From assembly GCF_006345805.1 (NCBI RefSeq), contig NC_043017.1, positions 24,800,001-24,864,000 on the forward strand: 64,000 bases of DNA, in the 5' to 3' direction. Below the pieces are notes generated by a model. That model was not told the DNA's origin, did not search any database, and saw only the letters and a program-made list of their open reading frames with translations. Source of the stretch: Octopus sinensis. Lineage: Eukaryota. Both the position numbers and the translations under genes were made by a program. Shown here piece by piece: positions 5,046 to 62,165 of this stretch. Numbering within the stretch: position 1 is the first letter of the stretch; the number at the start of each line of letters is the position of its first letter.

Positions 5046-5297
5046 CCACGGGTGTGTATGTTTGTGTAGAGCTAAGTTAACATTTTGAGAGAAAGGTTTT
5101 CCACAGATAACACAAGGATATGGCTTCTCACCAGTATGGGTGTGTTTGTATATAATTGAAGCTCAACCAGGAGAGAATGATTTAATGTGAACATCATGGG
5201 CATGTGGTCCCTCTCCTGTATGAATATATTGATGTTTAGTTAAATATCAATTGGTACAGAATGATTTCTCACAGATGTGGCGTCCAACCTGTATACT

Positions 5298-5690
5298 CTT
5301 TTACTCGTTTCAGGCATGTGACTGTGGCCACGCTGGAGCACCGCCTTTAGTCGATCAAATCGCCCCCAGGATTTATTCTTTGTAAGCCTAATACTTATTT
5401 TATCGGTCTCTTTTTTGCCGAACCGCTAAGTTTACAGGGACGTAAACACACCAGCATTGGTTGTCAAGCGATGTTGGGGACACAAACACAGACACACAAA
5501 CACGCACATACATATATATATACGACAGGCTTCTTTCAGTTTCCGTCTACCAAATCCACTTACAAGGCTTTGGTTGGCCCGAGGCTATAGTAGAAGACAC
5601 TTACCCAAGGTGCCACGCAGTGGAACTGAACCCGGAACCAACCATGTGGTTGGTTAGCAAGCTACTTACCACACAGCCACTCCTGCGCCT
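5298..5690 (-). mobile_element. SINE family B, full copy
   Basis: tRNA-like head (gcaggagtggctgtgtggtaagtagc...gggttcagt/gagttcca), central (AT/GT)n linker and a (TAAAAGAG)n tail. About 15 copies or fragments are present in the window. Confidence 0.85.
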
Positions 5691-8254: not shown

Positions 8255-8279
<25 letters not shown>

Positions 8280-9879
8280 CCTGTATGAATATGTGTGTGT
8301 CTATTTAAGTTACTACTTTCAGAGAATGATTTACCACATATGTCACAGTGATATGGTTTCTCTCCTGTATGAATACGTTTGTGAGAATTTAAGATGCAAT
8401 TTTCAGAGAATGACCTACCACAGATATCACAGTGATATGGTTTTTCTCCTGTATGTACACGTTTGTGACTATTTAAATTACAACTCTTCGAAAATGATTT
8501 ACCGCAGATATCACAGTGATATGGTTTTTCTCCTGTATGTGTACGTTTGTGACTATTTAAATTACAACTCTGAGAAAATGACTCACCACAGATATCACAA
8601 TGATATGGCTTCTCTCCTGTATGAATACGTCTGTGCCTGTTTAAGGTACTACTTATAGAAAATGATTTACCACAGATATTACACTGATATGGCTTCTCTC
8701 CTATATGAACATATTTGTGTTTGGTTAAGGTACTATTTTCAGAGAACGATTGACCACAGATATCACAATGATATGGTCTCTCACCAGTGTGAACGCGTTT
8801 GTGAGTATTTAATTTACTACTTGTGGGAAAGGATTTACCACAGATATCACACTGATGTGGCTTTTCTCCTGTATGGATACGCATATGTGTAAGTAATGCA
8901 CTATTTCTTGAGAAACATTTACCACAGATATCACAGTGATATGGTGTCTCTCCTGTATGAACACGCTTATGCTTAGTTAAATCACTACCTTTAGAGAAAG
9001 ATTTACCACAGATATCACACTGATATGGCTTTTTCTCCTTATGGATACGCATATGTGTAAGTAATGCACTATTTCTTGAGAACATTTACCACAGATATCA
9101 CAGTGATATGGTGTCTCTCCTGTATGAACACGCTTATGCTTAGTTAAATCACTACCTTTAGAGAAAGATTTACCACAGATATCACACTGATGTGGCTTTT
9201 CTCCTGTATGGATACGCATATGTGTAAGTAATGCACTATTTCTTGAGAAACATTTACCACAGATATCACAGTGATATGGTGTCTCTCCTGTATGAACACG
9301 CTTATGCTTAGTTAAATCACTACCTTTAGAGAAAGATTTACCACAGATATCACACTGATATGGCTTTTCTCCTGTATGGATACGCATATGTGTAAGTAAT
9401 GCACTATTTCTTGAGAAACATTTACCACAGATATCACAGTGATATGGTGTCTCTCCTGTATGAACACGCTTATGCTTAGTTAAATCACTACCTTTAGAGA
9501 AAGATTTACCACAGATATCACACTGATATGGCTTTTCTCCTGTATGGATACGCATATGTGTAAGTAATGCACTATTTCTTGAGAAACATTTACCACAGAT
9601 ATCACAGTGATATGGTGTCTCTCCTGTATGAATACGTTTGTGTAAATTTAAGGTGCCACTTTTAGAGAATGATTTACTACAAATGTCACAATGATATAGT
9701 TTTCCTCCCGCGTGAATATGTTTGTGCTCAATTAAGCAACGTCTTTCTGAGAATGACTTTTTACACACGTTACAGAAATATGACGTTTTTTCTGTCTCTT
9801 TTCGCATCTCATCAGGAATATTAATACTCTCAGACTCTGTTTTGATTTGAATTGGATTCTTAGAGTATTCATTTTCCAT
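8255..9879 (-). CDS. C2H2 zinc-finger protein A, about 18 fingers, with an apparent 1-bp frameshift near 9081
   Basis: ORFs 8977-9879 and 8255-9085 overlap in different frames. Repeats are CxxCxxxFxxxxxLxxHxxxH with TGEKP linkers. The stop codon is supplied by SINE C. Confidence 0.85.
8860..9625 (-). repeat. Near-identical 168-bp (two-finger) tandem repeat, about 4.5 copies
   Basis: Finger helices alternate RNSALLT (x5) and KGSDLTK (x4), with near-identical DNA including synonymous sites. Confidence 0.95.
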
Positions 9880-10110: not shown

Positions 10111-10294
10111 TCCATGTAGCAACTTCCTTTTCTTTTTAGATTATGATAAATATCGATGAAACATCTGATGTATGAGATACCTGTATGCCAATGGCATCTG
10201 ATATTTCTGAAATAATAGAGAAACGGTGTAAGATATACAGGATTTTAAAAGTAGTTTCAGCGATGAAAAATTTACTAAATCAAATCAAACCAAA

Positions 10295-11444: not shown

Positions 11445-11806
11445 TACTCTTTTTTTACTCTTTTACTTGTTTCAGTCATTTGACTGCGGCCATGCTGGAG
11501 CACCGCCTATAATCTTTTTTTTTTATAAGCCCAGTACTTATTCTATCGGTCTCTTTTACCGAACCGCTAGGTAACGGGGACATAAACACACCAGCATCGG
11601 TTGTCAAGCAATGCTAGGGGGACAAATACAGACACACACACGCATATATATATACGACGGGCTTCTTTCAGTCTCCGTCTACCAAATCCACTCACAAGGC
11701 ATTGGTCGGCTCGGGGCTATAGCAGAAGACACTTGCCCAAGATGCCACGCAGTGGGACTGAACCCGGAACCATGTGGTTGGTTAGCAAGCTACTTACCAC
11801 ACAGCC
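11445..11806 (-). mobile_element. SINE family B
   Basis: Family consensus, with a tail of (ctcttttta) repeats. Confidence 0.85.
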
Positions 11807-11972
11807 AGTACTGTATTTTTTTTTGTATTATCCTTATACACGTGCTTTTAAAATGAAAATATCTTCTCCCCGTAGTAAACGATATTTCGTTTCCCTTCCA
11901 AAACAAAATCAGGAACACAATTTTACGATGCAACAATATTTAAGAGTTAATAATGTTTCCATTATAAAACAA

Positions 11973-17858: not shown

Positions 17859-18767
17859 TTGTAAACAAAAGGCTTGTCCATACTGTATTGTTTGTTTTAG
17901 TTTCTCCACAACAGATCTGAGTCAGAATAAGTCTTTAAATCAAGAGTCAATAAATATATTTTGCTACATGGTTTGAGAATTTTCTACCATTTTAACGGTG
18001 AAATATGTGTGTTTGTCTATATCATAGGGCATGCCTGTAGGCGCGGGCATGGCTGCGTGGTTAGGGAGCTTGCTTCCTAACTACATGGTTTCGGGTTCAG
18101 TCCCACTGCATGGCACTTTGGGTAGGTGTCTTCTGCTATAGCCCCGAGTCGACCGAAGCTTTGTGATTGAATTTGGTAGGTGGAAGTTACTGCCGTGTGT
18201 GTATAGCTGCTCAGTGCCTCTCCGAAAGAGAGAGAGGGATAGTTATTATTTAAATATCTACTTTTCTGTGCCTGCCTGGGTCAAACATTTCATTGATGCA
18301 AAGTTACACATCACTGTGGCTAACTAAGTTCTTCATGGAAGATTTGAAACAAATGGCATTGCTTGTATGGCAGGGACACCTCACTTCCAAACATCACAAT
18401 ATCAAGACAAGGACACACACACACACACAAGGGAGCTGGGTTGAACTACTAGGAGACTTGAAAGAGAATATCCATCACATGAGCAAAACTTTATTCATGG
18501 ATACACCAGGTAGAGAATGCCAATAACATTGACAGGAATAGTAGCCTCTTCTGGACATGCAATGTATGCATCGTATTTCATCTAGGCAATTGCTCTCTAA
18601 CAACAGGAAGTGGCAACTAAATACCTGATTCATGAAACATATACATTTGATTCTAAACTCCCAGACTAGTAGAAAATGATGATTATGCCATGCCAGTGTT
18701 GAAGATATCACCCATATCATTAGTAGAAGTACAAAACTCATTAACATCACCAGTTGTAGTTATATAC

Positions 18768-19160
18768 TCTTTTACTTGTTTCAGTTATTTGAATGTGGCC
18801 ATGCTGGAGCACTGCCTTTAGTCGAGCAAATTGACCCCAGGACTTATTCTTTGTAAGCTTAGTACTTATTCTATCGGTCTCTTTTGCCGAACCGCTAAGC
18901 TACGGGGACGTAAACACACCTGCATCAGTTGTCAAGTGATGTTGGGGGGACAAACACAGACACAAAAACATATACACACACACACACACATATATATATA
19001 CGACGGGATTCTTCCAGTTTCCGTCTACCAAATCCACTCACAAGGTTTTGGTCGGCCCGAGGCTATAGTAGAAGACACTTGCCCAAGGTGCCACGCAGTG
19101 GGACTGAACACAGAACCATGTGGCTGGTAAGCAAGCTACTTACCACACAGCCACTCCTGC
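18768..19160 (-). mobile_element. SINE family B
   Basis: Family consensus. Confidence 0.85.
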
Positions 19161-20348: not shown

Positions 20349-21377
20349 TCATACGGGTTTATCTCCTGTATGAACATATATGTGTCTCTGTAATTTACTT
20401 TTATATGGGAATGATTTACCACAAATCTCACAGTGGTATGGTCTCTCCCCTGTGTGGGTATGTCTGTGTTTAATTAGGGGAGATGTGTGAGAGAATGATT
20501 TGCCACAGATATCACAGTGATATGGTGTCTCTCCTGTATGAATACGTCGATGAATATGTAAGGCACTGCCTTCAGAGAAAGACTTGCTACAGATATCACA
20601 CTGATATGGTTTCTCTCCTGTATGAACACGCTTATGTTTAATTAAGTCACTACTTTGAGAGCAAGATTTACCACAGATATCACAGTGATATGGTTTTTCC
20701 CCTGTATGAATTCGTATGTGTTTATTTAAATCATTCTTTTGGGAGAATGATTTACCACAGATATTACAGCAATGGGGCTTTTCTCCTGTATGAATATATA
20801 TATGTCTTTGTAATTTACTTTTATCTGGGAAGGATTTACCACAAATCTGACACTGGCACGGTCTCTCTCCTGTATGAATACTTCTGTGTTTAGTTAGGGA
20901 TGATGTGTGAGAGAAGGATTTAGCACAGATATCACACGGGTATGGTCTCTCTTCAGCATGAGTAAATTTGTGACTGTTTAAGTTACCATTTGTAGAGAAT
21001 GATTTACCACAGATATCACAATGATATGGTTTCTCTCCCGTATGAATACGTTTGTGAGTATTTAAGGAACTACTCGTGGAAAAGGATTTACCACAGATAT
21101 CACAGTGATATGGTTTCTCTCTTGTATGAATATGTTTATGGGTACTTAAAGTACCACTTGTAGAGAATGACTTACCACAGATATCACAACGATATGGCTT
21201 CTCTCCTGTATGAATACGTTTGTGATCATTTAGGTGGTGTTTCTGAGAGAATGACTTTGTACAGATGTCACAGGAGTATGGTTTTTCTTCTCTCTCATTC
21301 TGAATCTCATCATGAGAATCAACTCGCTCAGTCTCTATTTTAATTTCAATTGGTTCCTCACAGAATTCATTTTCCAT
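20349..21377 (-). CDS. C2H2 zinc-finger protein B, 342 aa, 11 fingers
   Basis: Open ORF that ends at a frameshift in a linker (GDKPV*). Predicted acceptor at 21602 and uORF MDIFPHL* at 21485-21508. Confidence 0.9.
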
Positions 21378-21919
21378 AATTTTACTTCCAACTCTTGAAG
21401 ATATTCCTGGCAGTGAAATAGAGAAATTTTGCTAATGGTGCCAAGTCACAACAACAATTATGTAACACCAATTCTATCACAGATTCATAGATGTGGGAAT
21501 ATATCCATTTTGTGTAGCAACCTCTTTTACTTTGTGTAAGATGATAAATATCAATGATACATCTAAGTTAAGTACTATTAAGCCAATGTCATTTTGATAT
21601 TTCTGAAATAAAAGAGAAACAGTATAAGATGTAGGCAATATTTCAAATAGTTTCAATTATGGAAATTATACATATTGGTAAACTGTAAATACAAATATTT
21701 ATGTCCACATTTGAGCTCCAAATTTCAGTGGAATCCTAGTTTATGCACCACATATAATCCCTCATAACTTTTTTGTATTTTGAAATTTAAAAAAAATTTC
21801 CAATCTTGTGTTATACACACAAGAATTCATATTATGGAAAAAAAATCAAAAACAAGATTGTTTTTGTTCTAGGCACATCTTATAATCAACTGATACCTTT
21901 CTTGTTTCTTTATAAACGA

Positions 21920-29014: not shown

Positions 29015-30112
29015 TCATGTATGAATACGTCGATGTATATGTAAGGCACTGCTTTCAGAGAAAGACTTGCCACAGATATCACAGTGATATGGTTTCTCTC
29101 CTGTATGAACACGCTTATGTTTAATTAAGTCACTACTTTGAGAGCAAGATTTACCACAGATATCACAGTGATATGGAGTCTCACCTGTATGAATACGCCG
29201 GTGTATATGTAAGGCACTACTTTCATAGAAAGACTTGCCACAGATATCACAGTTATATGGTTTCTCTCCTGTATGAACACGCTTATGTTTAATTAAGTCA
29301 CTACTTTGAGAGCAAGATTTACCACAGATATCACAGTTATATGGTTTCTCTCCTGTATGAACACGCTTATGTTTAATTAAGTCACTACTTTGAGAGCAAG
29401 ATTTACCACAGATATCACAGTGATATGGTTTTTCCCCTGTATGAATCCGTATGTGCTTATTTAAGTTAACATTTTGAACGAACGATTTACCACAGATATT
29501 ACAGAAATGGGGCTTTTCCCCCGTATGAACATATTTGTGTCTCCTTAATTTACTTCTATCTGGGAATGATTTACCACAAACCTCACAGTGATATGGTCTC
29601 TCACCTGAATGGACAGCTCTGTGATAAGTTAAGGACGATTTGTAAGAGAAGGATTTATGGCAGATATCACAATAATATGGTTTGTCTCCTGTATGAATAC
29701 GTTTGTGACTATTTAAGTTACCATTTGTAGAGAATGATTGACCACAGATATCACAGTGATGTGGTTTTTCACCTGTATGAATAAGTTTGTGTGTCTTTAA
29801 TGCACCCCTTGTGGAAAAAGATTTACCACAGATATCACAGAGATATGGTTTCTCTCCTGTATGAATAAGTTTGTGTGTCTTTAATGCACCCCTTGTAGAG
29901 AATGATTTACCACAGATATCACAATGATATGGCTTCTCTCCTGTATGAATACGTTTGTGATAATTTAGGTGGGGTTTCTGAGAGAATGACTTACCACAGA
30001 TGTCACAGGAATATGGTTTTTTCTCTCTCTCATTCTGAATCTCATCATGAGAACCAACTCGCTCAGTCTCTATTTTAATTTCAATTGGTTCCTCACAGAA
30101 TTCATTTTCCAT
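29015..30112 (-). CDS. C2H2 zinc-finger protein C, 365 aa, 12 fingers
   Basis: Open ORF ended by GGA>TGA in an HTG linker. Acceptor at 30454 and uORF MDIFPHL* at 30337-30360. Confidence 0.9.
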   Translation of the reverse strand: MENEFCEEPIEIKIETERVGSHDEIQNEREKKPYSCDICGKSFSQKPHLNYHKRIHTGEKPYHCDICGKSFSTRGALKTHKLIHTGEKPYLCDICGKSFSTRGALKTHKLIHTGEKPHHCDICGQSFSTNGNLNSHKRIHTGDKPYYCDICHKSFSYKSSLTYHRAVHSGERPYHCEVCGKSFPDRSKLRRHKYVHTGEKPHFCNICGKSFVQNVNLNKHIRIHTGEKPYHCDICGKSCSQSSDLIKHKRVHTGEKPYNCDICGKSCSQSSDLIKHKRVHTGEKPYNCDICGKSFYESSALHIHRRIHTGETPYHCDICGKSCSQSSDLIKHKRVHTGEKPYHCDICGKSFSESSALHIHRRIHT

Positions 30113-30714
30113 AATTTTACTTTTATTCTCATTTATTCATCTCTTGTTCTTGTGTTCTTTGATAAAGCATGACCTCTATTAATGTGTGAAGATGCTGCAG
30201 CCTCCTTTCTAAACATGTCCAAGTTTAAACAGAAAGCAACCAACTCTTGAAGATATTCCTGGCAGTGAAGCAGAGAAATTTTGCTAATGGTCTCAAGTCA
30301 CAACAACAATTATGTAACACCAATTCTATCGCAGATTTATAGATGCGGGAATATATCCATTTTGTGTAGCAACTTCCTTTACTTTGTGAAAGATGATAAA
30401 TATCAATGATACATCTAAGTTAAGTACTATTAAGCCAATGTCAGTTTGATATTTCTGAAATAATAGGGAAACAGTATAAGATGTAGGGAATATTTAAAAC
30501 AGATTCAACGATGGAGAATATACATTTCAATAGCGATAAAGTATAAATTTAAATATTTACATCCACATCTGAGGTTTTAACTTTGGTGGAATCCTAGTTT
30601 ATGCACAACATATAACCCCTTATAACATTTTTATATGTTGAAAATTTTCAATCTTGCGTTACACACACAAGAATTCACACTATTATGGAAAAAAAGAAAT
30701 AGGAAATTGATTTT

Positions 30715-34950: not shown

Positions 34951-36078
34951 TTACCAGAGGTCACAATGGTACACGTTCTGATCTGCATGAACAGATTTGT
35001 GATTATTCAAGGTCTGACTACTAGAAAATGATTTACCACAGATATCACAATGATATAGCTTTTCTTCTGTATGAATATGTTTGTGGTTATTTAAGGTATC
35101 ACTTCTACAAAATGACTTACCACAGATACCACAATGATACGGTTTCTCTCCTGTATGAATACGTTTGTGACTATTTAACTTACCACTTGTAGTGAGTGAT
35201 TTACCACAGATCTCACAGTGATAGGGTTTCTCTCCTGTGTGAAAACGTTTGTGATGATTTAAGTGACCGATTTGAGAGTATGATTTACCACACACGTCAC
35301 AGTGATATGGAGTCTCTCCTGTATGAATACGTCGATGTATATGTAAGGCACTACTTTCAGAGAAAGACTTGCCACAGATATCACAGTTATACGGTTTCTC
35401 TCCTGTATGAACACGCTTATGTTTAATTAAGTCACTACTTTGAGAGCAAGATTTACCACAGATATCACAGTGATATGGTTTTTCCCCTGTATGAATCCGT
35501 ATGTGCTTATTTAAATCATTCTTTTGAGAGAATGATTTGCCACAGATATTACAGCAATGGGGCTTTTCTCCTGTATGAATGTATATGTGTCTCTTTAATT
35601 TACTTTTATCTGGGAAGGATTTACCACAGATCTGACAGTGGCACGGTCTCTCTCCTGTGTGAATACTTCTGTGTTTACTTAAGGATGATGTGTAAGAGAA
35701 GGATTTACCACAGATATCACAATGATATGGTTTCTCTCCCGTATGAATACGTTTGTGAGTATTTAATGCACTAATTGTGAAAAATGATTTACCACAGATA
35801 TCACAGTGATTTGGTTTCTCTCTGGTATGAGTATATTTATGGGTATTTAAAGTACCACTTGTAGAGAATGACTTACCACAGATATCACAATGATATGGCT
35901 TCTCACCTGTATGAATACGTTTGTGATCATTTAAGTGGTGTTTCTGAGAGAATGACTTTTTACAGACGTCACAGGAATATGGTTTTTCTTCTCTCTCATT
36001 CTGAATGTCATCATGAGAATCAACTAGTTCAGTCTCTATTTTAATTTCAATTGGTTCCTCACAGAATTCCTTTTCCAT
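34951..36078 (-). CDS. C2H2 zinc-finger protein D, 375 aa, 12 fingers
   Basis: Open ORF that ends at a frameshift (HCDLW*). Acceptor at 36394, uORF MDIFPHL* at 36282-36305, exon-1 donor at 37815. Confidence 0.9.
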
Positions 36079-39000
36079 AATTTTACTTCTCCATCAAATT
36101 CCTCTCTTGTTCTTGTGTTCTTTGATAAAGCATGTCCTTTATTGATGTGGGAAGACACTACAGCCTCCTTTAAACAGAAAGCAACCAACACTTGAAGATA
36201 TTCCTGGCAGTGAAGCAGAGAAATTTTGCTAATGGTGCCAAGTCACAACAACAATTATGTAACACCAATTCTATCGCAGATTTATAGATGCGGGAATATA
36301 TCCATTTTGTGTAGCAACTTCCTTTACTTTGTGAAAGATGATAAATATCAATGATACATCTAAGTACTATTAAGCCAATGTTGTTTTGATATTTCTGAAA
36401 TAATAGAGAAACAGTATAAGACGTAGGGGATATTTAAAACAGATTCAACGATGGGGAATATACATTTCAATAGCGATAAAGTATAAATTTAAATATTTAC
36501 ATCCACATCTGAGGTTTTAACTTTGGTTAATCCTAGTTTATGCACCACACATAATCCCTCATAACATTTTTATATTTTGAATGTTTCCGAACAATTTTTC
36601 AAGCGTACGTTATACATACAAAACTTCATATTATTATGGAAAAAAGCAAAAAGATTGTTGTTATGGGATTCAAGTGCTATTTAGCTGTTATAATAATAAT
36701 AATGATCATCTGATACTGTTCTCGTTTCTTTATCACTGACGTACTCTTTCTCCAGAAATATTTTAAATGATCCTTTACTGAGATTTAAGCAAAAAAAATC
36801 GTACTGTCCGCATAAAAATGTTATGAGTGGTTGTGGGGTGCTTAAACCGTGAATCTGCCTACATATTTTATTAAAACATTCAAAAATATAAGGAATGGCC
36901 ATAATAGGACATTCGACTCACTAGAAAGAGCAGCCAAACTCAAACCGCTAAAAGTTGTAATTCTGAAATTGAAAGAGAAATAAAAACGTTGACTCAGGCC
37001 TGTCATGGAGAAACTGAAACAAACAAAACTCTATAGATGAGAATTTTTTGCTACCCTTATATTTATATATTTTATTAAAACTATATCGAAGAATCACATG
37101 TGAGGTCTATATATCACTGGTTATAGCAACACCATCAAATTAGTCGTTAAATAGTTGACCTGGGGGCTTTCTGTTCGGAAACTCATCCGTCATCTTTCGA
37201 TCACTGTTTGAGACAGAGCAAAAACATCGTCGCAGAGATACTAGATCCGTTATTTCTGCTAAAAATTGCACATAATTCCACCTTTTTTTTTGTGTGTGTG
37301 TTCATTAACGTTGTTTATAATTAGACACATTAAAGTTAGTATAATGTATTGTTCTATTCTCATAATAAACATGCTTTGGAATGGAAAATATATCCAAGTG
37401 AAAAGTATTTCATTTCCTTTTCAAAACATACGGAACAGAATTTTGCGATTTAACTATGCTTCAGAGTTAAGTAACAATACTTCCACTGTAAGAGAATTTG
37501 CATTACGGGAGAGAAGGGAAAAAAGGCAATTTGGGAAACTTAGAAGTTATCTGTTAAATACACACCTACGGGTACCAATATTAATTGTAAGGTACAATAA
37601 GGTATAAGTGTCATCAGAAATGATGGACTTCTTATGTTTATAACCTCTAACGTCGGAAGTAAACAATGTTTTGATTTCACTATTTCATAGCAATGCCATG
37701 CATTTATAGGTTCCTTACCATCTTCGAAATTACGCTGTAATTCTTTACGTTACACAAAATTAATGAAAATGAATAGAAAAATGATCGAATGAAGGAAGTA
37801 CATTAAGAAAAATACCTCGTATAAATCACAGCTGTTATTAAGAAGTGAGTAACGCTTGTCATATGTATTGTTATTACACATTCATTAACTGAGGAATTCC
37901 TTAACGGATTCTGACTGGCGATTGTCGATGCTAGGACTTAATTGTTGCTTTTTGAGTAAGAAGAGCCAGAGAGAAAGAAATTGCTCAGAAATAAAAGGGA
38001 GGGGAATTTTCCCTCAAGGGGAGAGAACTGCTCAGAGCTTATAATCTTTCATTATTTAACAAGGTCATTTTCTTATGAATGAGAGAGAGAGAGCATATGA
38101 AATAATATTTCCATATTGATTAATTTTGATGCTTCTCATTTTCGACGTTCGAGAACCTGCAGGTGACATTATTTCGCTCTTATTGGAGCTTATCGACATA
38201 ACGTAAGCTAGGGGCATGAATTAGTTGGTGTGTGTGCTTTTAAAACATTGGGAAACTATACAAGATGGAATTTTTCTTCTTGTGTTTTCCTTTCTGACAC
38301 CACTAAGAGCGAAGCAAATGAGTCAAGAGATAGAAAGAAAGCAATGAAATCCTCAGTCATTTAAAATTAAAATTGCATTATACAACAGTTCGATCAATAT
38401 TTTCTATGTTCTTTACTTTTAACAGTGGAGGAGAGACGAAGACGGAAAGACACTGGAAGTAATAACAGAGTTAATTACAGATACTAACGCTTGGACGCGT
38501 ACAATATATGAATATATATATGCATGCCCACACTCATGTACATACGTACCAGATTTTAAAATAAATGTGCTTTTCAGCTGTGATATTATAAAACGTCCAA
38601 ATTCGAAATCATAATATATGATAAACATATAAACAACTACCTACCTATCTGTCCTCCCTTTTTCTCAGAAATATTTGCTATTACTACAGGCTTCAAAGTT
38701 TAGCACAAGGACAGACACTTGGGGGAAGGTGCAAGTCAATTACATCAACCCCTGTGCTAAACTGGTACTTATTTTATCAACTCTGAAAGGATGAAAGACG
38801 AAGGTGACATCGGTGGAATACTGATTCAGAATGCAAAGATGAATGAAGTGCCGCTTAGCATTTTGCCAGGCATACTAGCAATTCTGCCAGCTCTCCATCC
38901 TAATAATGCTATTAATATTGCATCTATCACTCTTATAGCTCTAGCATAAATCATTTCTTGTCCCTCTACCCAAATAATCTGTATGGTAATATTGCTGAAA

Positions 39001-42947: not shown

Positions 42948-44147
42948 TCAAAGAAACAACTTCTCTGCTCTATGGACATATTTGTGTCGAGATAAGTTCC
43001 TTCGTTGAGAGAACGATTCTCCACAGAGAACACAGTGATATGGTTTTTCACTTGTATGAGTACGTTTGTGTAGATTTAAGCTTGTATTCCTGGAGAATGA
43101 CTGACCACAGATATTACACTGATATGGCTTTTCTCCTGTATGGATACGCATATGTATAAGTAAGGCACTATTTCTTGAGAAACATTTACCACAGATATCA
43201 CAGTGATATGGTTTTTCTCCTGTATGAACACGCTTATGCTTAGTTAAATCACTACCTTTAGCGAAAGATTTACCACAGATATCACAGGGAAACGGTTTTT
43301 CTCCTGTATGAACTCGTTTATGGTGAATTAAGGTACTACCATCAGAAAATGATTTACCACAGATATCACAGTGATACGGTTTCTCTCCTGTATGAACACG
43401 CTTATGTTTAATTAAATCACTACTTTGAGAGCAAGTTTTACCACAGATATCACAGTGATATGGTTTTTCACCTGTATGAATCCGTATGTGCTTATTCAAG
43501 TCAACATTTTGACTGAATGATTTACCACAGGTATTACAGCTATAGGGTTTTTCTCCTGTATGAACATATATGTGTCTCCTTAATTTACTTTTATCCTTAA
43601 ATGATTTACCACAAATCTCACAGTGAAATGGTCTCTCACCTGAATGGACACCTCTGTGAGTACTTAAGGATGACATGTGAGAGAATGATTTACCGCAGAT
43701 ATCACAATGGTATGGTCTCTCTCCTGTATGAATACGTCTGTGACTTGTTAACATACCATTTGTAGTGAGTGATTTACCACAGATATCACATTGATATGGT
43801 TTCTCCCCTGTATGAAAACGTTTGTGATTATTTAAGTGACCAATCTGAGAGTAAGATTTACCACAAATATCACAATGGTATGGCTTATCTCCTGTATGAA
43901 TACGTTTGTGAGTAATTAAGGAACTACTTTTAGAAAATGATTTACCACAGATATCACAATGATATAGTTTCTCTCTGGTATGAAAAAATTTGTGATCAGT
44001 TAGGCGACTTTTCTGAGAGAACGACTTTTTACAGACATCACAGGAGTACAATCTTTTTTTTCTCTCATTCTGAATCTCATCAGGAAAATCAAGTCTGTCA
44101 CACTTTGTTTTAATTTCAATTGATTCCTCACAGAATTCATTTTCCAT
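42948..44147 (-). CDS. C2H2 zinc-finger protein F, 399 aa, 13 fingers
   Basis: Open ORF lacking only the last ancestral finger. Acceptor at 44507, uORF MDISLHL* at 44395-44418, exon-1 donor at 46410. Confidence 0.9.
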
Positions 44148-45050
44148 AATTATTCTTCTCTGTCAACTTTCGTCTCTTGTTCTTGTACTCTTTGAAGTAT
44201 TTCTACGACTATATCTCCATAAAGCGTGACCTTCGTTGATGTTTGAAGATACTGCAACTTCCGTTATAAATATGTCCAAGTTTAAAATGGAAAGCAACCA
44301 ACTCTTGAAGATGTTCCAGGCAATGAAATATGAAAATTTTGCTAATGGTCTGAGGTCACAACAACAATTATGTCACACCAATTCTATCGCAGATTTATAG
44401 ATGCAGGGATATATCCATTTTGTGTAACAACTTCCTTTACTTTGTGAAAGATGATAAATATCAATGATACATCTAAGTACTATTTAGCCAATGTCATTTT
44501 GATATTTCTGAAATAATAGAGAAACAGTATGAGATACAGGGTATGTTTAAAAGTAGATTCAACGTTGGGAAATATATTACATTTGAACAGAGATAAAGTG
44601 TAAATATAAACATTTATGTCAACATATGAGCTGTAAAAAATGAGGGTGGAATTCTGGTTTAAGAGCCCTATGTAACCCCTTATACTTTGGAATCCTCAGA
44701 AAATTTTTGTAAATTTGTGTTCAATACAGGAGAATTATTGAAAAACAAAGCAACAAATTCTGTTTGTGGGATTGAAGGGCTATTTAGCTGTTATTTTTAG
44801 CACATCTTATGACCACCTGATACCTTTATCATTTCTTTTTTCACTGACGTATAGGTGTTTACTAATATCTTTCTCCGCATAAACATATTTAATGGTCCGT
44901 TGCCAAGATGTAACCAAAAACTTTGTACTGTCCGCATTTCAGATTCTGATTTCGAAAAATTCGAAAGTTTAAAAAACATTTTGTTTATAAATTTGAAAAA
45001 AATTTTTCATATTTTTAATAACTGTATGAATTCTTGTGTGTAGAATACAG

Positions 45051-47352: not shown

Positions 47353-48670
47353 TCTAATCTAATATTGGCAATGGAATGTCTGCTAAACAATTTCGGCAGA
47401 AATCGTAATTTACTGACAGACAAGTACTCATGTTTATACAGTGCATTGTAGGACACATATGTGTTTACTAACAACGTAGATCACTATCAATGACTAAATA
47501 ATTACTGTGATTTATACGAGGTATTTTTTCTTAATGTTCTTTTCATTCATTCTTTTTCTTTTTTGTTTTCATTCATTCATGTTATCATTTCTGAAGAATT
47601 GCCGGCGTAATTTCGATGAGGCAACAAAAGTCGTTGGGTGGGCGGGATTTACACATTTGTAGTTATACCGATTCTTATATATTATTGTATCTTACAATTA
47701 ATATATTTTTGTCCTAGGTCTGTATTTAATTAATAACTTCTAAGTTACCTAAATTGTTTTTTTCTTCTTCCGTAATACACAGTCTTAAACATTGTTACAT
47801 TGCATAATTCTGTTCCCTATGTTTTGAGAAGGAAATACAATACTGTTTACTACGAGAAAATAGTTTCCATTCCAAAACATGCATTACGAATATAGACCAG
47901 TACATTATACTAACTTAAATGTGTTTAATTATAAACAGTATTAAATAAAAATGAAGATGGAATAACGTGTAATATTTAAGAGAAATAATGGATCATGTAT
48001 ATCTGCAACAATGTTGGGTAAATTTATAGTTTCACATTAGATTCAATGTTCTGCTCAGTCAGAATTGATCTAGGGTCAAACAGTAATCGATCGCCGATGA
48101 ATGATCGGTTAATATATAGTTTAACACCCAGTCACCAAAACAAAAAGAACCCATCTAATAGGTGTAAAAAAAATTTAATATTCATTTTCTACACTTTTTT
48201 TTACACCTATTTGTGTTTGTCCCCCTAGCATTGCTTGACAACCGATGCTGGTGTGTTTATGTCCCCGTCACTTAGCGGTTCGGCAAAAGAGACCGATAGA
48301 ATAAGTACTGGGCTTACAAAGAATAAGTCCCGGGGTCGAGTTGCTCGACTAAATGCAGTGCTCCAGCATAGCCGCAGTCAAATGACTGAAGCAAGTAAAA
48401 GGGTAAAGAGAGTAAATGTTTATATTTACAGTTTACCAATATTGAAATGTAGTGAATTTTCCATCATTGAATCTACTTTTAAGTATCTCCTGTATCTTAT
48501 ACTGTTTCTCTATTATTTCAGAAAAATATCAGATAACATTGGTATAAAAGTATTTCTTCAGATGCATCATCAATATTTATCATCTTTCAAAGGAAGTTGT
48601 TACACAGGATGAATATAATCCTGTTTATAAATTTGTGATGGAATTAGTGTGAAATGTTGTGACCTGAGAC

Positions 48671-51181: not shown

Positions 51182-51389
51182 CCTGAGACCATTAGCAAAA
51201 TTCTCCTACATCCCTGTCAGGAATATATTTGCAAGTTGGTGGTTAAATTTTCACAAGAGGTTATGAAAAATGAATTCTGTGAGAAGTCAATTCAAATTAA
51301 AACAGAGACTGAAAGAGCCCGTACACTCAGACATACACGAATGAGACACACCCTCATGTGAACACGACAGCTTCCACTGACATTCATAA

Positions 51390-53448: not shown

Positions 53449-54133
53449 CTTTTTATTATTGGGAATTTTCAAAACATGTGTACAACAGAAATTAGCAAAA
53501 TTTTCTGAAGATTCCAAAATATAAAAAGATTAGGAAAGGTGCTAAAACCAGAATCCATCCAAATTTAGAGCTGAAATGTGGACGCCAATGTTTACTCTGC
53601 ACGCGTAAGAGAAAGCAGGGTATGGTAGTCGCTCGTCTTTGTGTGTTTGCAAAATTACTAGAAAACGGCTGAATGGATTTTCACCAAATTTGTCAGAAAT
53701 ACTCATTGGGTGAGTGTTTCGAACTCATGATTTTACTTTATCTTCAGAACTGGCGGACGGGTGAATCAAAATGATTTTTTTCTTCGATACATATGTATAA
53801 ACGATAAGCAGGGGAAATAACTCTTGATGTAATTTTGTTGAAATATGAATTCAGCAGAGACTATATTTTTATTAAATAAAATTCTATTTTATCGTTGTGT
53901 TCGTGTAGGGTAGGCCTTGCCCATCCGATGCCATTTTTTTCTTTATATTTACAGTTTATCAATATTGAAATGTAGTGAATTTTCCATCACTGAATCTACT
54001 TTTAAGTATCCCCTGTATCTTATACTGTTTCTCTATTATTTCAGAATTATCAGATGACATTGGTGTAAAAGTATTTCCTCAGATGTATCATCAATATTTA
54101 TCATTTAAAAAGTAAAAGGATTTGTTACACAGG

Positions 54134-54392: not shown

Positions 54393-56417
54393 ATGGAAAA
54401 GGAATTCTGTGAGAAGCCAATTCAAATTAAAACAGAGATTGAAAGCATTGATTTTGCTGATGAGATGCTGAAAGAGATAAAAGAAGGATCATGTTCCCCT
54501 GATATCTATACAGAGTCATTCTCTCAAAAACGTAACCCAACTGATCCCAAATATATTCATACCAGAGGGAAACCATATAATTGTGACATCTGTGGCAAAT
54601 CATTCTCTAAAAATAGTAACTTAAATACTCACAAACGTATTCATACAGGAGAGAAACCATTTCATTGTAATATCTGTGGTAAATCATTCTCTACAAGTGG
54701 TAACTTAACTAGTCACAAACGTATTCATACGGGAGAGAAACCACATCACTGTGATATCTGTGGTAAATCCTTTTCTGAAAGAGGTACCTTAAATAGTCAC
54801 AAACGTATCCATACAGGAGAGAAACCATACTCCTGTGGTACCTGTGGAAAATCATTCTCCGAAAGAGGTACCTTAAATACTCACAAGCATATTCATACAA
54901 GAGAGAAACCACATCACTGTGATATCTGTGGTAAATCATTTTTTAACATCGGTGCCTTAAATACCCATACACGTATTCATACAGGAGACAAGCCATATTA
55001 TTGTGATATCTGTGGTAAATCATTTTCTAGAAGTGATACTTTGAATACTCACAAATCTGTTCATGCTGGACAGAAACCATACCCGTGTGATATCTGTGGT
55101 AAATCCTTCTCTCACACATCGTCCCTAACTAAACACAGAAGTATCCACACAGGGGAGAGACCGTACCATTGTCAGATTTGTGGTAAATCATTCCCAGATA
55201 AAAGCAAATTACAGAGACACATATATGTCCATACAGGAGAAAAACCCTATGGCTGTAATATCTGTGGCAAATCATTCAGTCAAAATGTTGACTTAAATAA
55301 GCACATACGGATTCACACAGGGGAAAAGCCATATCACTGTGATATCTGTGGTAAATCTTGCTCTACAAGCAGTGACTTAATTAAACATAAGCGTGTTCAT
55401 ACAGGAGAAAAGCCATATCACTGTGATATCTGTGGCAAGTCTTTCTCGGAAGGCAGTGCTTTACATAAACATAGGCGTATACATACAGGAGAGACACCAT
55501 ATCACTGTCATGTTTGCGGTAAATCATTTTCTGATGGTAGTACCTTAACTAAGCACAAAAATATTCATACAGGGGAAAAACCATATCAGTGTGATATCTG
55601 TGGTAAATCATTTTCTAAAAGCCATACCTTAACTAAGCATAAACGTATCCATACAGGAGAAAAACCATATCAATGTGATATCTGTGGTCAGTCTTTCTCC
55701 AGGAATGGCTATTTAGCTAAACACAAACACACTCATATTGGTGAGAAAACATATCACTGTGTTATTTGTGGGAAATCATTCTCTCAAAGTAATGACTTAT
55801 CCAAACACAAACGCACTCATACAGGTGAACGACCATATCATTGTGCTATCTGTGGAAAATCTTTCTCTCAAAGTAACGACTTATACAGACACAAACGCAC
55901 TCATACAGGTGACAAGCCATATCAGTGTGACATCTGTGAGAAAGCATTCTCTACCAATAGATACTTAACTAAACATAAATATATTCATGCAGGAGAGGGA
56001 CCGGATGTCCATGATATTTATAGTGAATCATTCTCTTCTGGTGAAGCTTCAATTATTCACAAACCCAATCCTGCAGCTGAGGAGACGTATCAGTGTGATA
56101 TCTGCGGTAAATCATTTTCTCAACAATATTTAACTATACACAAACGCACTCATACAGGTGAGAAGCCATATCTCTGTGTCATCTGTGGGAAATCTTTCTC
56201 TCAAAATGTTCACTTAACTCTACACAAACGCACTCATACAGGTGAGAAGCCACATCACTGTGACATTTGTGGAAGATCATTCTCTCAGATAAGTACCTTG
56301 TCTAATCACAAATATGTTCACAGAGCAGAAAAACTGTACCTCTGTGATATTTGTGGCAAATCATTCTCTAGAAAGTTTGAATTAACTAGACACAAACGTC
56401 TTCATATACAGGAGTGA
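54393..56417 (+). CDS. C2H2 zinc-finger protein G, 674 aa, about 21 canonical plus 2 degenerate fingers; the only full-length copy
   Basis: Uninterrupted ORF from aattATGG, homologous to the paralog starts. It ends HKRLHIQE*. Confidence 0.93.
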
Positions 56418-58512: not shown

Positions 58513-58911
58513 GAAATAAACTTGAAAATATTATATTATTGTTTTGCTATTTTATTTTCATATGAAAGTATTGTTTCTTGATTTTTTTCTCTGAGTTTAA
58601 ATAATATTCCTTAAGAAATATTATACTAATACAATGATGGTTATAATGTTAGTGCCAAAAGAAAACAAATATTATAGCAATATTATTCTGCAGATAGCCA
58701 ATAGATTGTTTATACAAGAGCTCTACAAGTGATAGTATATTAAAAGCAGTATTTCTGAGAGGAAGAAAAATAGGTAATAGAGAAAGTAGGGAGAGCAGGT
58801 AGGTAGGTGTTTCTTTATATATATCTGCATATTGTGTACTGTGTATCATCTGATTATAAATTAAAGTATTTCACTTAATGACAGTTGCAAAACACACTCA
58901 AGCACATTATT

Positions 58912-59300
58912 CTCTCTCTTTTACTCTTTTACTTGTTTCAGTCATTTGACTGTGGTCATGCTGGAGCACCGCCTTTAGTCGAGCAAATCGACCCCGGCAC
59001 TTATTCTTTGTAAGCCCAGTACTTATTCTATCAGTCTCTTTTGCCGAACCGCTAAGTGACGGGAACGTAAACACACCAGCATCGTTTGTCAAGCAATGCT
59101 AGGGGGACAAACACAGACACACAAACATATACATATATACGACAGGCTTCTTTCAGTTTCCGTCTACCAAATCCACTCACAAGGCATTGGTTGGCCCGAA
59201 GCTATAGTAGAAGACACTTGCCCAAGGTGCCACACAGTGGGACTGAACCCGGAACCATGTGGTTGGCAAGCAAGCTACTTACCACACAGCCACTCCTGCG
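58912..59300 (-). mobile_element. SINE family B
   Basis: Family consensus. Confidence 0.85.
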
Positions 59301-60130: not shown

Positions 60131-60137
60131 GAGATAT

Positions 60138-60929
60138 TACTCTTTTACTTATTTCAGTCATTTGACTGCGGCCATGCTGGAGCACCTCCTTTAGTCGAGC
60201 AAATCGACCCCGGGACTTATTCTTTGTAAGCCCAGTACTTATTCTATCGGTCTCTTTTGCCGAACCGCTAAGTGACGGGGACATAAACACACCAGCATCG
60301 GTTGTCAAGCAATGCTAGGGGGACAAACGCGCACATATATATACATATATATGACAGGCTTCTTTCAGTTTCCGTCTACCAAATCCACTCACAAGGCAAT
60401 TGTCGGCCCGGGGCTATAGCAGAAGACACTTGCCCAAGATGTCATACAGGGGGACTGAACCCAGAACCATGTGGTTGGTTAGCAAGCTACTTACCACACA
60501 ACCACTCCTGCGCCTATTAGATATTAGATACTTTTTGTTACCCTTTCTGTAAGTTATCAAGTTAGTGCCATGAGTGAACCACAATTGAAATATGCAATTT
60601 ACGTGTGTACACTTAACTCATTAGCTTGCTGGAAATCACACCACTAAGTCAGAAAATCATCTCAAACACACACAATCTACATCATTTGAAATGTAGTGTG
60701 GTAAGAAGCTTCCTTTCCAACCAGAAATAACTGGTCTAAGGGAGATACACTGACCCCGGACTTTTTATTTTTTGGTGATCTCTGACCAAATGACCTTAAC
60801 GGATTTCTGCCTCTCAGAGGTGTAGAGTTACATTTGTTTTTGGGTTTAGAATCCGACAAAATGTCTGCGAGGCTAAGGCTTTTGTGGATGCGGAACCATT
60901 GGTCATTCTACGACTGGTCATTAACTTCA

Positions 60930-60971
<42 letters not shown>

Positions 60972-62165
60972 ATATATTAGGCACAAGAGTGGCTGTGTGG
61001 TAAGTAGCTTGTTTACCAACTGCATAGTACTGGGTTCAGTCCCACTATGTGGCACCTTGGGCAAGTGTCTTCTACTATAGTCTTGGGCCGACCAAAGCCT
61101 TGTAAGTAAATTTGGTAGACAGAAACTGAAAGAAGCCCGTCATATATATATATATGTATGTATATGTTTGTGTGTCTGTGTTTGTCCCCCCCCCCCCAAC
61201 ATCGCTTGACAACCGATGCTGGTGTGTTTGTGTCCCCGTAACTTAGCAGTTCAGCAAAAGAGACAGCTAGAATAAGTACTAGGCTTACAAAGAATAAGCC
61301 CTAAGGTTGATTTGCTCAACTAAAGGAGGTGCTCCAGCATGGCCACAGTCAAATGACTTAAACAAATAAAAGAATATATATATATATATATATATATATA
61401 AACATACAATGGGTTTTTTTCAGTTTCTGTCTACCAAATCTACTCAAAGCTTTGGTTGGCCCAAGGCTTTAGTAAAAGACACTTGCTCAAGGTGCCACAC
61501 AGTGGGACTGAACTTGGAACCATGTGGTTGGGAAGCAAACTTCTTACCACACAGAGTACTTTTCAAATGGTGTAGATTAAAATCATATGGGAAATACACG
61601 AGGAAAAAATAAGACTACGTGGGTGTGCATTCATACATACTGACATACATCACAACTGTCTTCAACATTTCAAGTTTCATTTTGTAGCTATATCAGTGAC
61701 GTGTTACTATACATGTGTGCATGTCCAATTATTATTATTTTTTTTTTCACATAAGCGCAGGAGTGGCTGTGTGGTAAGTAGCTTGTTTACCAACCACATG
61801 GTTCCGGGTTCAGTCCCACTGCGTGGCACCTTGGGCAAGTGTCTTCTACTATAGCCTTGGGCCAACCAAAACCTCGTGAGTGTATTTGGTAGATGGAAAC
61901 TGAAAGAAGCCTGTCATATATATGAATATATATATATATATATGCATGTGTGTGTTTCTGTGTCTGTGTTTGTCCCCCTAGCATTGCTTGACAACCGATG
62001 CTGGTGTGTTTATGTCTCCGTTACTTAGCGGTTCGGCAAAAGAGACCGATAGAATAAGTACTGGGCTTACAAAAGAATAAGTCCCGGGGTCGAGTTGCTC
62101 GATTGTAGGCGGTGCTCCAGCATGGCCGCAGTCAAATGACTGAAACAAGTAAAAGAGTAAAGAGT
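60138..62165. mobile_element. Four SINE B copies in alternating orientation
   Basis: About 60138-60512 (-), 60983-61375 (+), 61405-61552 (-) and 61757-62165 (+). Confidence 0.85.

Follow-up and report, generated by a model that had tools for sequence, protein, structure and literature searches.

A short acidic leader with a SUMO-consensus motif in a tandemly duplicated Octopus C2H2 zinc-finger subfamily

Short N-terminal leaders and SUMO in zinc-finger proteins

About 700 zebrafish zinc-finger proteins (ZNFs) carry FiNZ, a Glu-rich N-terminal sequence of 28 amino acids that is described as "highly conserved" and has a separate exon, which precedes that of the fingers (PMC10547256). Knock-down of FiNZ derepresses LTR elements, and the published translation-blocking morpholino, which matched 447 zebrafish ZNFs without a mismatch, decodes to MAFIKEE (PMC10547256). 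In another study, FiNZ-ZNFs co-precipitated with TRIM33, and binding through a KRAB-like fold was proposed (PMC11603059). SUMO is mentioned in neither of these papers (PMC10547256, PMC11603059), and an N-terminal effector or motif is not mentioned in a paper on the expansion of cephalopod C2H2 genes (PMC12513265).

The first-pass annotation of the locus described here stated that SUMO often confers repression on transcription factors, and SUMO-dependent repression is established (PMC3554661, PMC7915335, PMC8604812). Transcription is restrained by synergy-control (SC) motifs, in which Pro or Gly lies within a few residues on both sides of a SUMO site (PMC3554661), and SETDB1, Mi-2, and HP1 are recruited by Sp3 when it carries SUMO (PMC7915335). 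Few proteins are as heavily SUMOylated as ZNF transcription factors, and modification with SUMO2 is favored in acidic contexts (PMC8604812). KRAB silencing also runs through SUMO, in that auto-SUMOylated TRIM28 recruits SETDB1 (PMC7915335).

In this study, a cluster of Octopus genes was analyzed whose C2H2 proteins open with a short leader containing psi-K-x-E. The leader was shown to be acidic and predicted to be unstructured, and the subfamily that carries it was shown to be young, tandemly duplicated, restricted to Octopus, and without a known effector domain.

The leader copies of the Octopus cluster

The window, meaning the whole analyzed stretch of 64,000 nucleotides, is an Octopus C2H2 zinc-finger cluster; the record of its gene G matches O. 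sinensis GCA_006345805.1 (CM016879.1) with an offset of 24,800,000. Exactly seven copies of a leader of ~32 amino acids that opens C2H2 genes were found in a pattern scan of all six frames and by tblastn, for which three leaders served as queries (Table 1). The stretch 9790-9879 of the reverse strand encodes the first 30 residues of ORF 8977-9879, and the leader peptides are identical to those listed in the first-pass annotation. That annotation had described every start as an acidic leader of ~30 amino acids with no other domain, a description borne out by the seven copies, which are real N-termini in proteins where Pfam finds fingers only. In each of the six full copies, the ORF runs without interruption from the leader into the fingers. 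A further ZNF fragment in the window is without a leader.

Table 1. Positions of the leader copies and of other features of the window
Feature	Positions	Strand	Remarks
Leader of gene A, codons 1-32	9784-9879	-	IKTE at 9835-9846
ORF of gene A, 300 aa	8977-9879	-	Finger array runs on in another frame (ORF 8255-9085)
Gene A, both overlapping frames	8255-9879	-	Contains three identical copies of a 56-aa two-finger unit
Leader of gene B	21282-21377	-	IKIE at 21333-21344; full ORF 20349-21377
Leader of gene C	30017-30112	-	IKIE at 30068-30079; ORF 29015-30112
Leader of gene D	35983-36078	-	IKIE at 36034-36045; ORF 34951-36078
Leader of gene F, natural variant IKTK	44052-44147	-	Motif position 44103-44114; ORF 42948-44147
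Copy H, 18 leader codons (MKNEFCEKSIQIKTETER) and homologous upstream DNA	51263-51316	+	No finger array after
Leader of gene G	54393-54488	+	IKTE at 54426-54437; ORF from Met to 56417, 674 aa
Degenerate first finger of gene G	54489-54560	+	One Cys and one His ligand lost
ZNF fragment	near 40.2-41.0 kb		
Pyrimidine tract and CAG (TTTCTCTATTATTTCAG)	10207-10223	-	About 330 nt upstream of the ATG of A
Equivalents of the TTTCTCTATTATTTCAG block	21603-21619, 30455-30471, 36395-36411, 44508-44524	-	
Further equivalent of the TTTCTCTATTATTTCAG block	54028-54044	+	
Orphan part-copy of the ZNF upstream block	48412-48670	+	76% identical to -450 to -180 of C
ORF with BED zinc finger, 510 aa	49289-50821	+	Between F and H; Pfam E=3e-5
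SINE-like repeat, examples	5294-5684, 11447-11816, 18765-19158, 58911-59297, 60137-60509, 61759-62164		About 400 bp

The leader was shown to be the true N-terminus of these proteins: a start at its Met is backed by a strong context, upstream stops in frame, and three independent annotations. The initiation context, ATTATGGAA, is conserved among the copies, with A or G at -3 in all of them and G at +4 in all except H, and in-frame stops lie upstream of every leader ATG. The annotated CDS of G in O. sinensis begins at the leader Met, as do B and a 365-aa gene at the position of C in the O. vulgaris annotation and the NCBI model of a relative in O. bimaculoides. An identical copy of the B protein is annotated in O. 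vulgaris as a single-exon CDS (OX597834.1), and the ORF of G is an annotated O. sinensis gene. A 21-kb stretch of O. vulgaris is 99.3% identical to window positions 10321-31382 and hence uninformative for divergence. Exact-sequence look-ups of A, C, D, and F, and of P0125, the O. bimaculoides ortholog of a BED-finger ORF of the window, matched no record.

Upstream of the start codons, non-coding DNA is homologous among the copies over about 500-600 nt. The best-conserved stretch of the repeat unit is the TTTCTCTATTATTTCAG block, a pyrimidine tract with CAG that lies 225-360 nt before each ATG with an identity of 0.94 across lineages and is a probable 3' splice site for an exon in the 5' UTR. 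An upstream coding exon joined in frame was ruled out by the stops between this block and every ATG, and a splice acceptor within the leader or directly ahead of it was ruled out as well, the sequence there being purine-rich with no conserved pyrimidine tract and AG. The orphan part-copy of the upstream block adjoins a SINE-like repeat and has neither leader nor fingers.

Several copies carry changes. A single GAG-to-AAG change at codon 15 of F replaces E by K in an ORF that is otherwise intact (399 aa). The homology of H, a truncated duplicate that precedes G by 3 kb, stops after codon 18; the leader of G itself is intact and is followed by the degenerate finger. The frame break in gene A is a frameshift or an assembly error; the triple 56-aa unit together with the split frames indicates, from the sequence, a probable recent internal duplication plus frameshift or assembly error.

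Other elements are interspersed with these genes. The BED-finger ORF, an annotated gene of O. sinensis, shares an identity of at least 90% with its counterparts in O. vulgaris and O. bimaculoides, the three forming one cluster; it possibly represents a domesticated hAT-type transposase. More than 15 copies of the SINE-like repeat, with 78-94% identity, take up much of the DNA that separates the ZNF genes of the window; the repeat also occurs upstream of the O. bimaculoides relative.

Searches for known domains returned the fingers only. Pfam-A hmmscan of B and G matched C2H2-type families only, and the leader alone had no match in Pfam-A. A KRAB, SCAN, BTB, or ZAD domain was thus rejected for the leader, as Pfam finds none, and the sequence fits no classical SIM, CtBP (PxDLS), or eh1 motif. 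AlphaFold2, run on residues 1-90 of B with five paralogs as the alignment, predicted a coil for residues 1-30 (pLDDT 47-51) and gave 83-90 for the fingers. This predicted model fits a linear motif in a disordered tail, not a folded domain.

Occurrence and conservation of the motif

Psi-K-x-E is the consensus of Ubc9. In its strict form, [VILMF]KxE, it occurs exactly once per protein and always at residues 12-15 (I12-K13-x-E15), so that the canonical motif followed by acidic residues, as reported in the first-pass annotation, could be confirmed. I-K-[I/T]-E is found in six of the seven copies (A, B, C, D, G, and H), all of them IKTE or IKIE, and it is correct that F alone has lost it within the window, through E-to-K (IKTK). 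The same six copies hold the SUMO core psi-K-x-[E/D], where psi is a large hydrophobic residue, and this core is absent from F and from the O. bimaculoides relative (YKMQ). Acidic residues lie within about 10 positions downstream of the core (E17, D20, D23, and E24 in B and G; E17, D23, and E24 in A), and the segment with the candidate acceptor lysine is predicted by the AlphaFold2 model to be accessible and unstructured. P9, three residues upstream of I12, is present in A, B, C, D, and G (5/8), with Ser in F, H, and the O. bimaculoides relative. A downstream Pro, P22, seven residues after E15, occurs only in A, F, and that relative, and C has G20. In 14-33% of trials, a composition-shuffled leader holds [VILMF]KxE; a motif in the ancestor is therefore unremarkable.

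The distribution of the leader was assessed with a profile of seven leaders (36 positions) searched exhaustively against 1.84 billion cluster representatives at a cut-off of E<=0.001. It found one further carrier, the "zinc finger protein 626-like" protein of O. bimaculoides (XP_052833728.1, here P0121), in a library that does include O. bimaculoides proteins, at a database size where a 36-position profile sees close relatives only and with clustering at 50% identity that may hide carriers. A homologous-protein search with the leader alone gave no candidate, that with full-length B was dominated by vertebrate ZNFs and gave no cephalopod leaders, and a leader-plus-half-finger profile gave 4 candidates and one irrelevant 46-aa match, again with no cephalopod leaders. 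Such scarce profile matches argue against the leader as the module of the whole cephalopod expansion; the role of effector module proposed for it in the first-pass annotation is not supported at that scale, and the single further carrier has a degenerate YKMQ.

The leader of P0121, MEKELCEDSVEYKMQLKRVNFPDD, keeps the Lys, has Tyr for Ile and Gln for Glu, and carries a net charge near zero. Homology between its locus and the window starts 4 nt before the ATG and spans the leader at 68-71% identity; the DNA upstream is unrelated to that of the window apart from SINE-like repeats. Compared to the window genes, P0121 has a leader pN of about 0.35 and pS of 0.2-0.44, and a finger pN of 0.20-0.27 and pS of 0.47-0.66.

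Comparison of the copies showed that the presence of the motif in all of them reflects shared ancestry, the copies being young tandem duplicates, since they descend from one duplicated unit whose upstream non-coding DNA is equally conserved. Across the four divergent window lineages A, B, F, and G, identity is 0.68-0.94 in the upstream region from -420 to -150, 0.87, 0.76, and 0.79 in successive 30-nt windows of the leader, and 0.66-0.88 in the fingers; by this measure, conservation of the leader does not exceed that of the non-coding flank. Among the window paralogs, dN/dS (Nei-Gojobori) of the leader is scattered around 1 (0.4 to 7), and that of the first two fingers is 0.2-0.7. The first-pass annotation had called the SUMO consensus conserved, a claim that is not supported by a leader dN/dS of about 1 and an identity no higher than that of the flank. 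Within the leader, codons 2-16 (A: 9832-9876, reverse strand) differ at about 0.13 of synonymous sites, which number only about 7.5, and at about 0.2 of non-synonymous sites; for codons 17-32, the values are 0.24-0.48 and 0.23-0.36 (comparisons with A). The low divergence of codons 2-16 at both site classes hints at a nucleotide-level constraint or gene conversion.

For residue-level conservation, the 8 sequences were collapsed to five lineages (BCD, F, A, GH, and P0121). Four columns are invariant, E2, E4, K13, and D23, with K13 kept in 8/8 sequences and 5/5 lineages; I10 and I12 are each kept in 4/5 lineages. E15 is kept in 3/5 lineages, compared to a column mean of 3.16/5, so that the motif survives in about the proportion that neutral decay would leave. 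In these 8 sequences, K13 thus appears to be conserved above its neighbors and E15 does not. Mean lineage conservation is 3.75/5 for columns 2-13 and 2.79/5 for columns 14-32, and only residues 1-13, M-E-x-E-[FYL]-C-E-x-x-[IV]-x-[IY]-K, were shown in this alignment to lie above the leader average. As this conserved core ends at the lysine, x-E and the acidic patch fall in the variable half. The 96 nt of the leader contain no indel in any copy, compared to an indel-rich adjoining upstream flank, a pattern that argues against a functionless stub.

Psi-K-x-E was also counted in 64 non-redundant pre-finger regions of unrelated animal poly-ZNFs, taken from the 120 best finger-based matches to B with the N-termini disregarded and covering mammals, reptiles, amphibians, fish, coelacanth, insects, and a crustacean. 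This set with control motifs replaced an earlier test that was confounded by about 40 ZNF263 orthologs. The motif was found 75 times compared to 24.0 +- 4.8 in composition shuffles, a 3.1-fold enrichment reached by 0 of 500 shuffles. None of the controls was enriched (ratios of 0.99 for K-psi-x-E, 0.88 for the inverted motif, 0.84 for psi-R-x-E, 0.84 for psi-K-x-Q, and 0.98 for psi-K-x-K). EIKIEDTEE and DNIKIETLDF are examples from these regions, and enrichment of psi-K-x-E in pre-finger regions may be a general feature of animal poly-ZNFs.

A putative SUMO mechanism, its alternatives, and known systems

SUMO acceptance at K13 with recruitment of repressors is the most likely single mechanism for the leader, although its chance is well below even. 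In the copies that keep the Glu, K13 would be the acceptor of Ubc9-mediated SUMO conjugation. SUMO on the leader would recruit SIM-containing repressors of the SETDB1/MCAF1, Mi-2/NuRD, and HP1 type, and these would be brought to the DNA sequence recognized by the fingers. The leader would act as a synergy-control or NDSM-type linear motif, not as a folded effector domain, and the motif would be dispensable in some members, namely F and the O. bimaculoides relative.

This mechanism is favored by the single strict psi-K-x-E per protein and the invariant K13; by the specific enrichment of psi-K-x-E in pre-finger regions and the MAFIKEE of FiNZ; by the indel-free leader and its homology to the O. 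bimaculoides paralog despite unrelated upstream DNA; by the finding of fingers only by Pfam and of a leader coil in AlphaFold2; and by the SUMO literature (PMC3554661, PMC7915335, PMC8604812). It is weakened by the loss in two of the five lineages (F, in an intact ORF, and P0121) of the Glu that Ubc9 needs, by the leader dN/dS of about 1, the equally conserved flank, and the 14-33% rate of chance motifs, and by the position of the acidic patch in the poorly conserved half, with a charge near zero in P0121.

Three other explanations have to be weighed. It is possible, if somewhat doubtful, that the leader is a hitch-hiking stub, that is, a start-codon region copied with each duplication that has no effector role and in which psi-K-x-E arose by chance from a composition rich in E, K, and I. 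In that case, only the finger arrays would be active in these proteins, or decay may be under way in many copies. A dN/dS of about 1, a motif that arises by chance in 14-33% of shuffles, the equal conservation of the non-coding flank, and the loss of E15 in 2/5 lineages would all be in keeping with a stub, as would the damaged copies (the frameshift of A, the truncation of H, and the dead first finger of G) and the finding of only one further carrier among 1.84 billion representatives. However, the leader is free of indels in 8 copies next to an indel-rich flank, its homology reaches a distant paralog with unrelated upstream DNA, residues 1-13 are above average with K13 invariant, and ZNF pre-finger regions in general show a specific enrichment of psi-K-x-E.

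The same conservation of residues 1-13 bears on a different short linear motif, an unlikely reading in which the core MExE[FYL]CExx[IV]x[IY]K would bind a cofactor directly, like the proposed binding of FiNZ to TRIM33, or would form an acidic-hydrophobic strand for activation or dimerization, with K13 as part of an interface and not as a SUMO acceptor. Columns 2-13 stand at 3.75/5 compared to 2.79/5 for columns 14-32, and the alternating I-E-I-K-I-E suits an amphipathic strand; for the cofactor, the co-precipitation of FiNZ-ZNFs with TRIM33 offers a precedent (PMC11603059). Yet AlphaFold2 predicts no structure for the leader, Pfam and the profile search showed no similarity to FiNZ, KRAB, or others, and synonymous conservation of codons 2-16 is as strong as non-synonymous conservation, with no pointer to selection at the protein level. 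The remaining explanation appears improbable: the first ~48 nt of the ORF would be kept for a function in DNA or RNA, such as a translation-initiation region, a promoter-proximal element, or a gene-conversion tract, with the peptide motif as a by-product. Codons 2-16 are indeed low at both synonymous (about 0.13) and non-synonymous (about 0.2) sites, identity across lineages is 0.87 in the first 30 nt, and the ATTATGGAA context is conserved. On the other hand, these very small numbers come from only about 7.5 synonymous sites, an element in the first ~48 nt leaves the intact frame and length of codons 17-32 unexplained, and no RNA or DNA motif was identified.

A broader extension of the SUMO mechanism, improbable on present evidence, is that independent KRAB-less ZNF families have converged on a disordered acidic psi-K-x-E leader that is directly SUMOylated. 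The octopus leader, cyprinid FiNZ, and many pre-finger regions of fish and insects would then be the same minimal effector, recruiting SETDB1-type silencers without KRAB or a TRIM28-like adaptor, with the octopus leader as the smallest natural example and F as a natural loss-of-function allele. Octopus genomes contain very many C2H2 genes, and a SUMO-acceptor leader of 13-15 residues, if sufficient for repression, would provide an adaptor-free route from a DNA-binding array to heterochromatin and would link the octopus genes to FiNZ and to the psi-K-x-E enrichment across animal poly-ZNFs. What the present evidence shows is a leader that evolves fast and is confined to one lineage and, within it, to one small subfamily.

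Among known types, the leader is probably best filed as a SUMO-consensus linear motif in a disordered transcription-factor N-terminus. It resembles the synergy-control and NDSM motifs of GR, AR, Nurr1, Sp3, and Elk-1 in having a psi-K-x-E core in a disordered region, an upstream Pro in 5/8 octopus copies, and acidic residues within 10 positions downstream, and repression would come via SIM-containing co-repressors in the octopus proteins as well (PMC3554661, PMC7915335). It differs from them in that its modification is putative, a nearby downstream Pro or Gly is missing in most copies, and the Glu is not conserved across lineages. With KRAB-TRIM28 of vertebrates and ZAD of insects, the leader shares the N-terminal position on tandemly expanded C2H2 arrays. 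Those domains are folded, 40-90 amino acids long, and detected by Pfam, whereas the octopus leader is Pfam-negative and a predicted coil.

FiNZ is the closest described analog of the octopus leader, and the two are analogous, not homologous. There is no sequence similarity between them: the leader profile matched no fish protein, and the octopus leader starts with MENEFCEE. FiNZ has its own exon, whereas the octopus leader shares an ORF with the fingers, and FiNZ is conserved in about 700 genes, compared to a dN/dS of about 1 and the 8 sequences found for the octopus leader. What they have in common is that both are short (28 compared to about 32 amino acids), Glu-rich, lineage-specific N-terminal leaders on massively duplicated KRAB-less poly-C2H2 families, that neither resembles a known domain, and that both carry a psi-K-x-E near the N-terminus, which in FiNZ lies within MAFIKEE.
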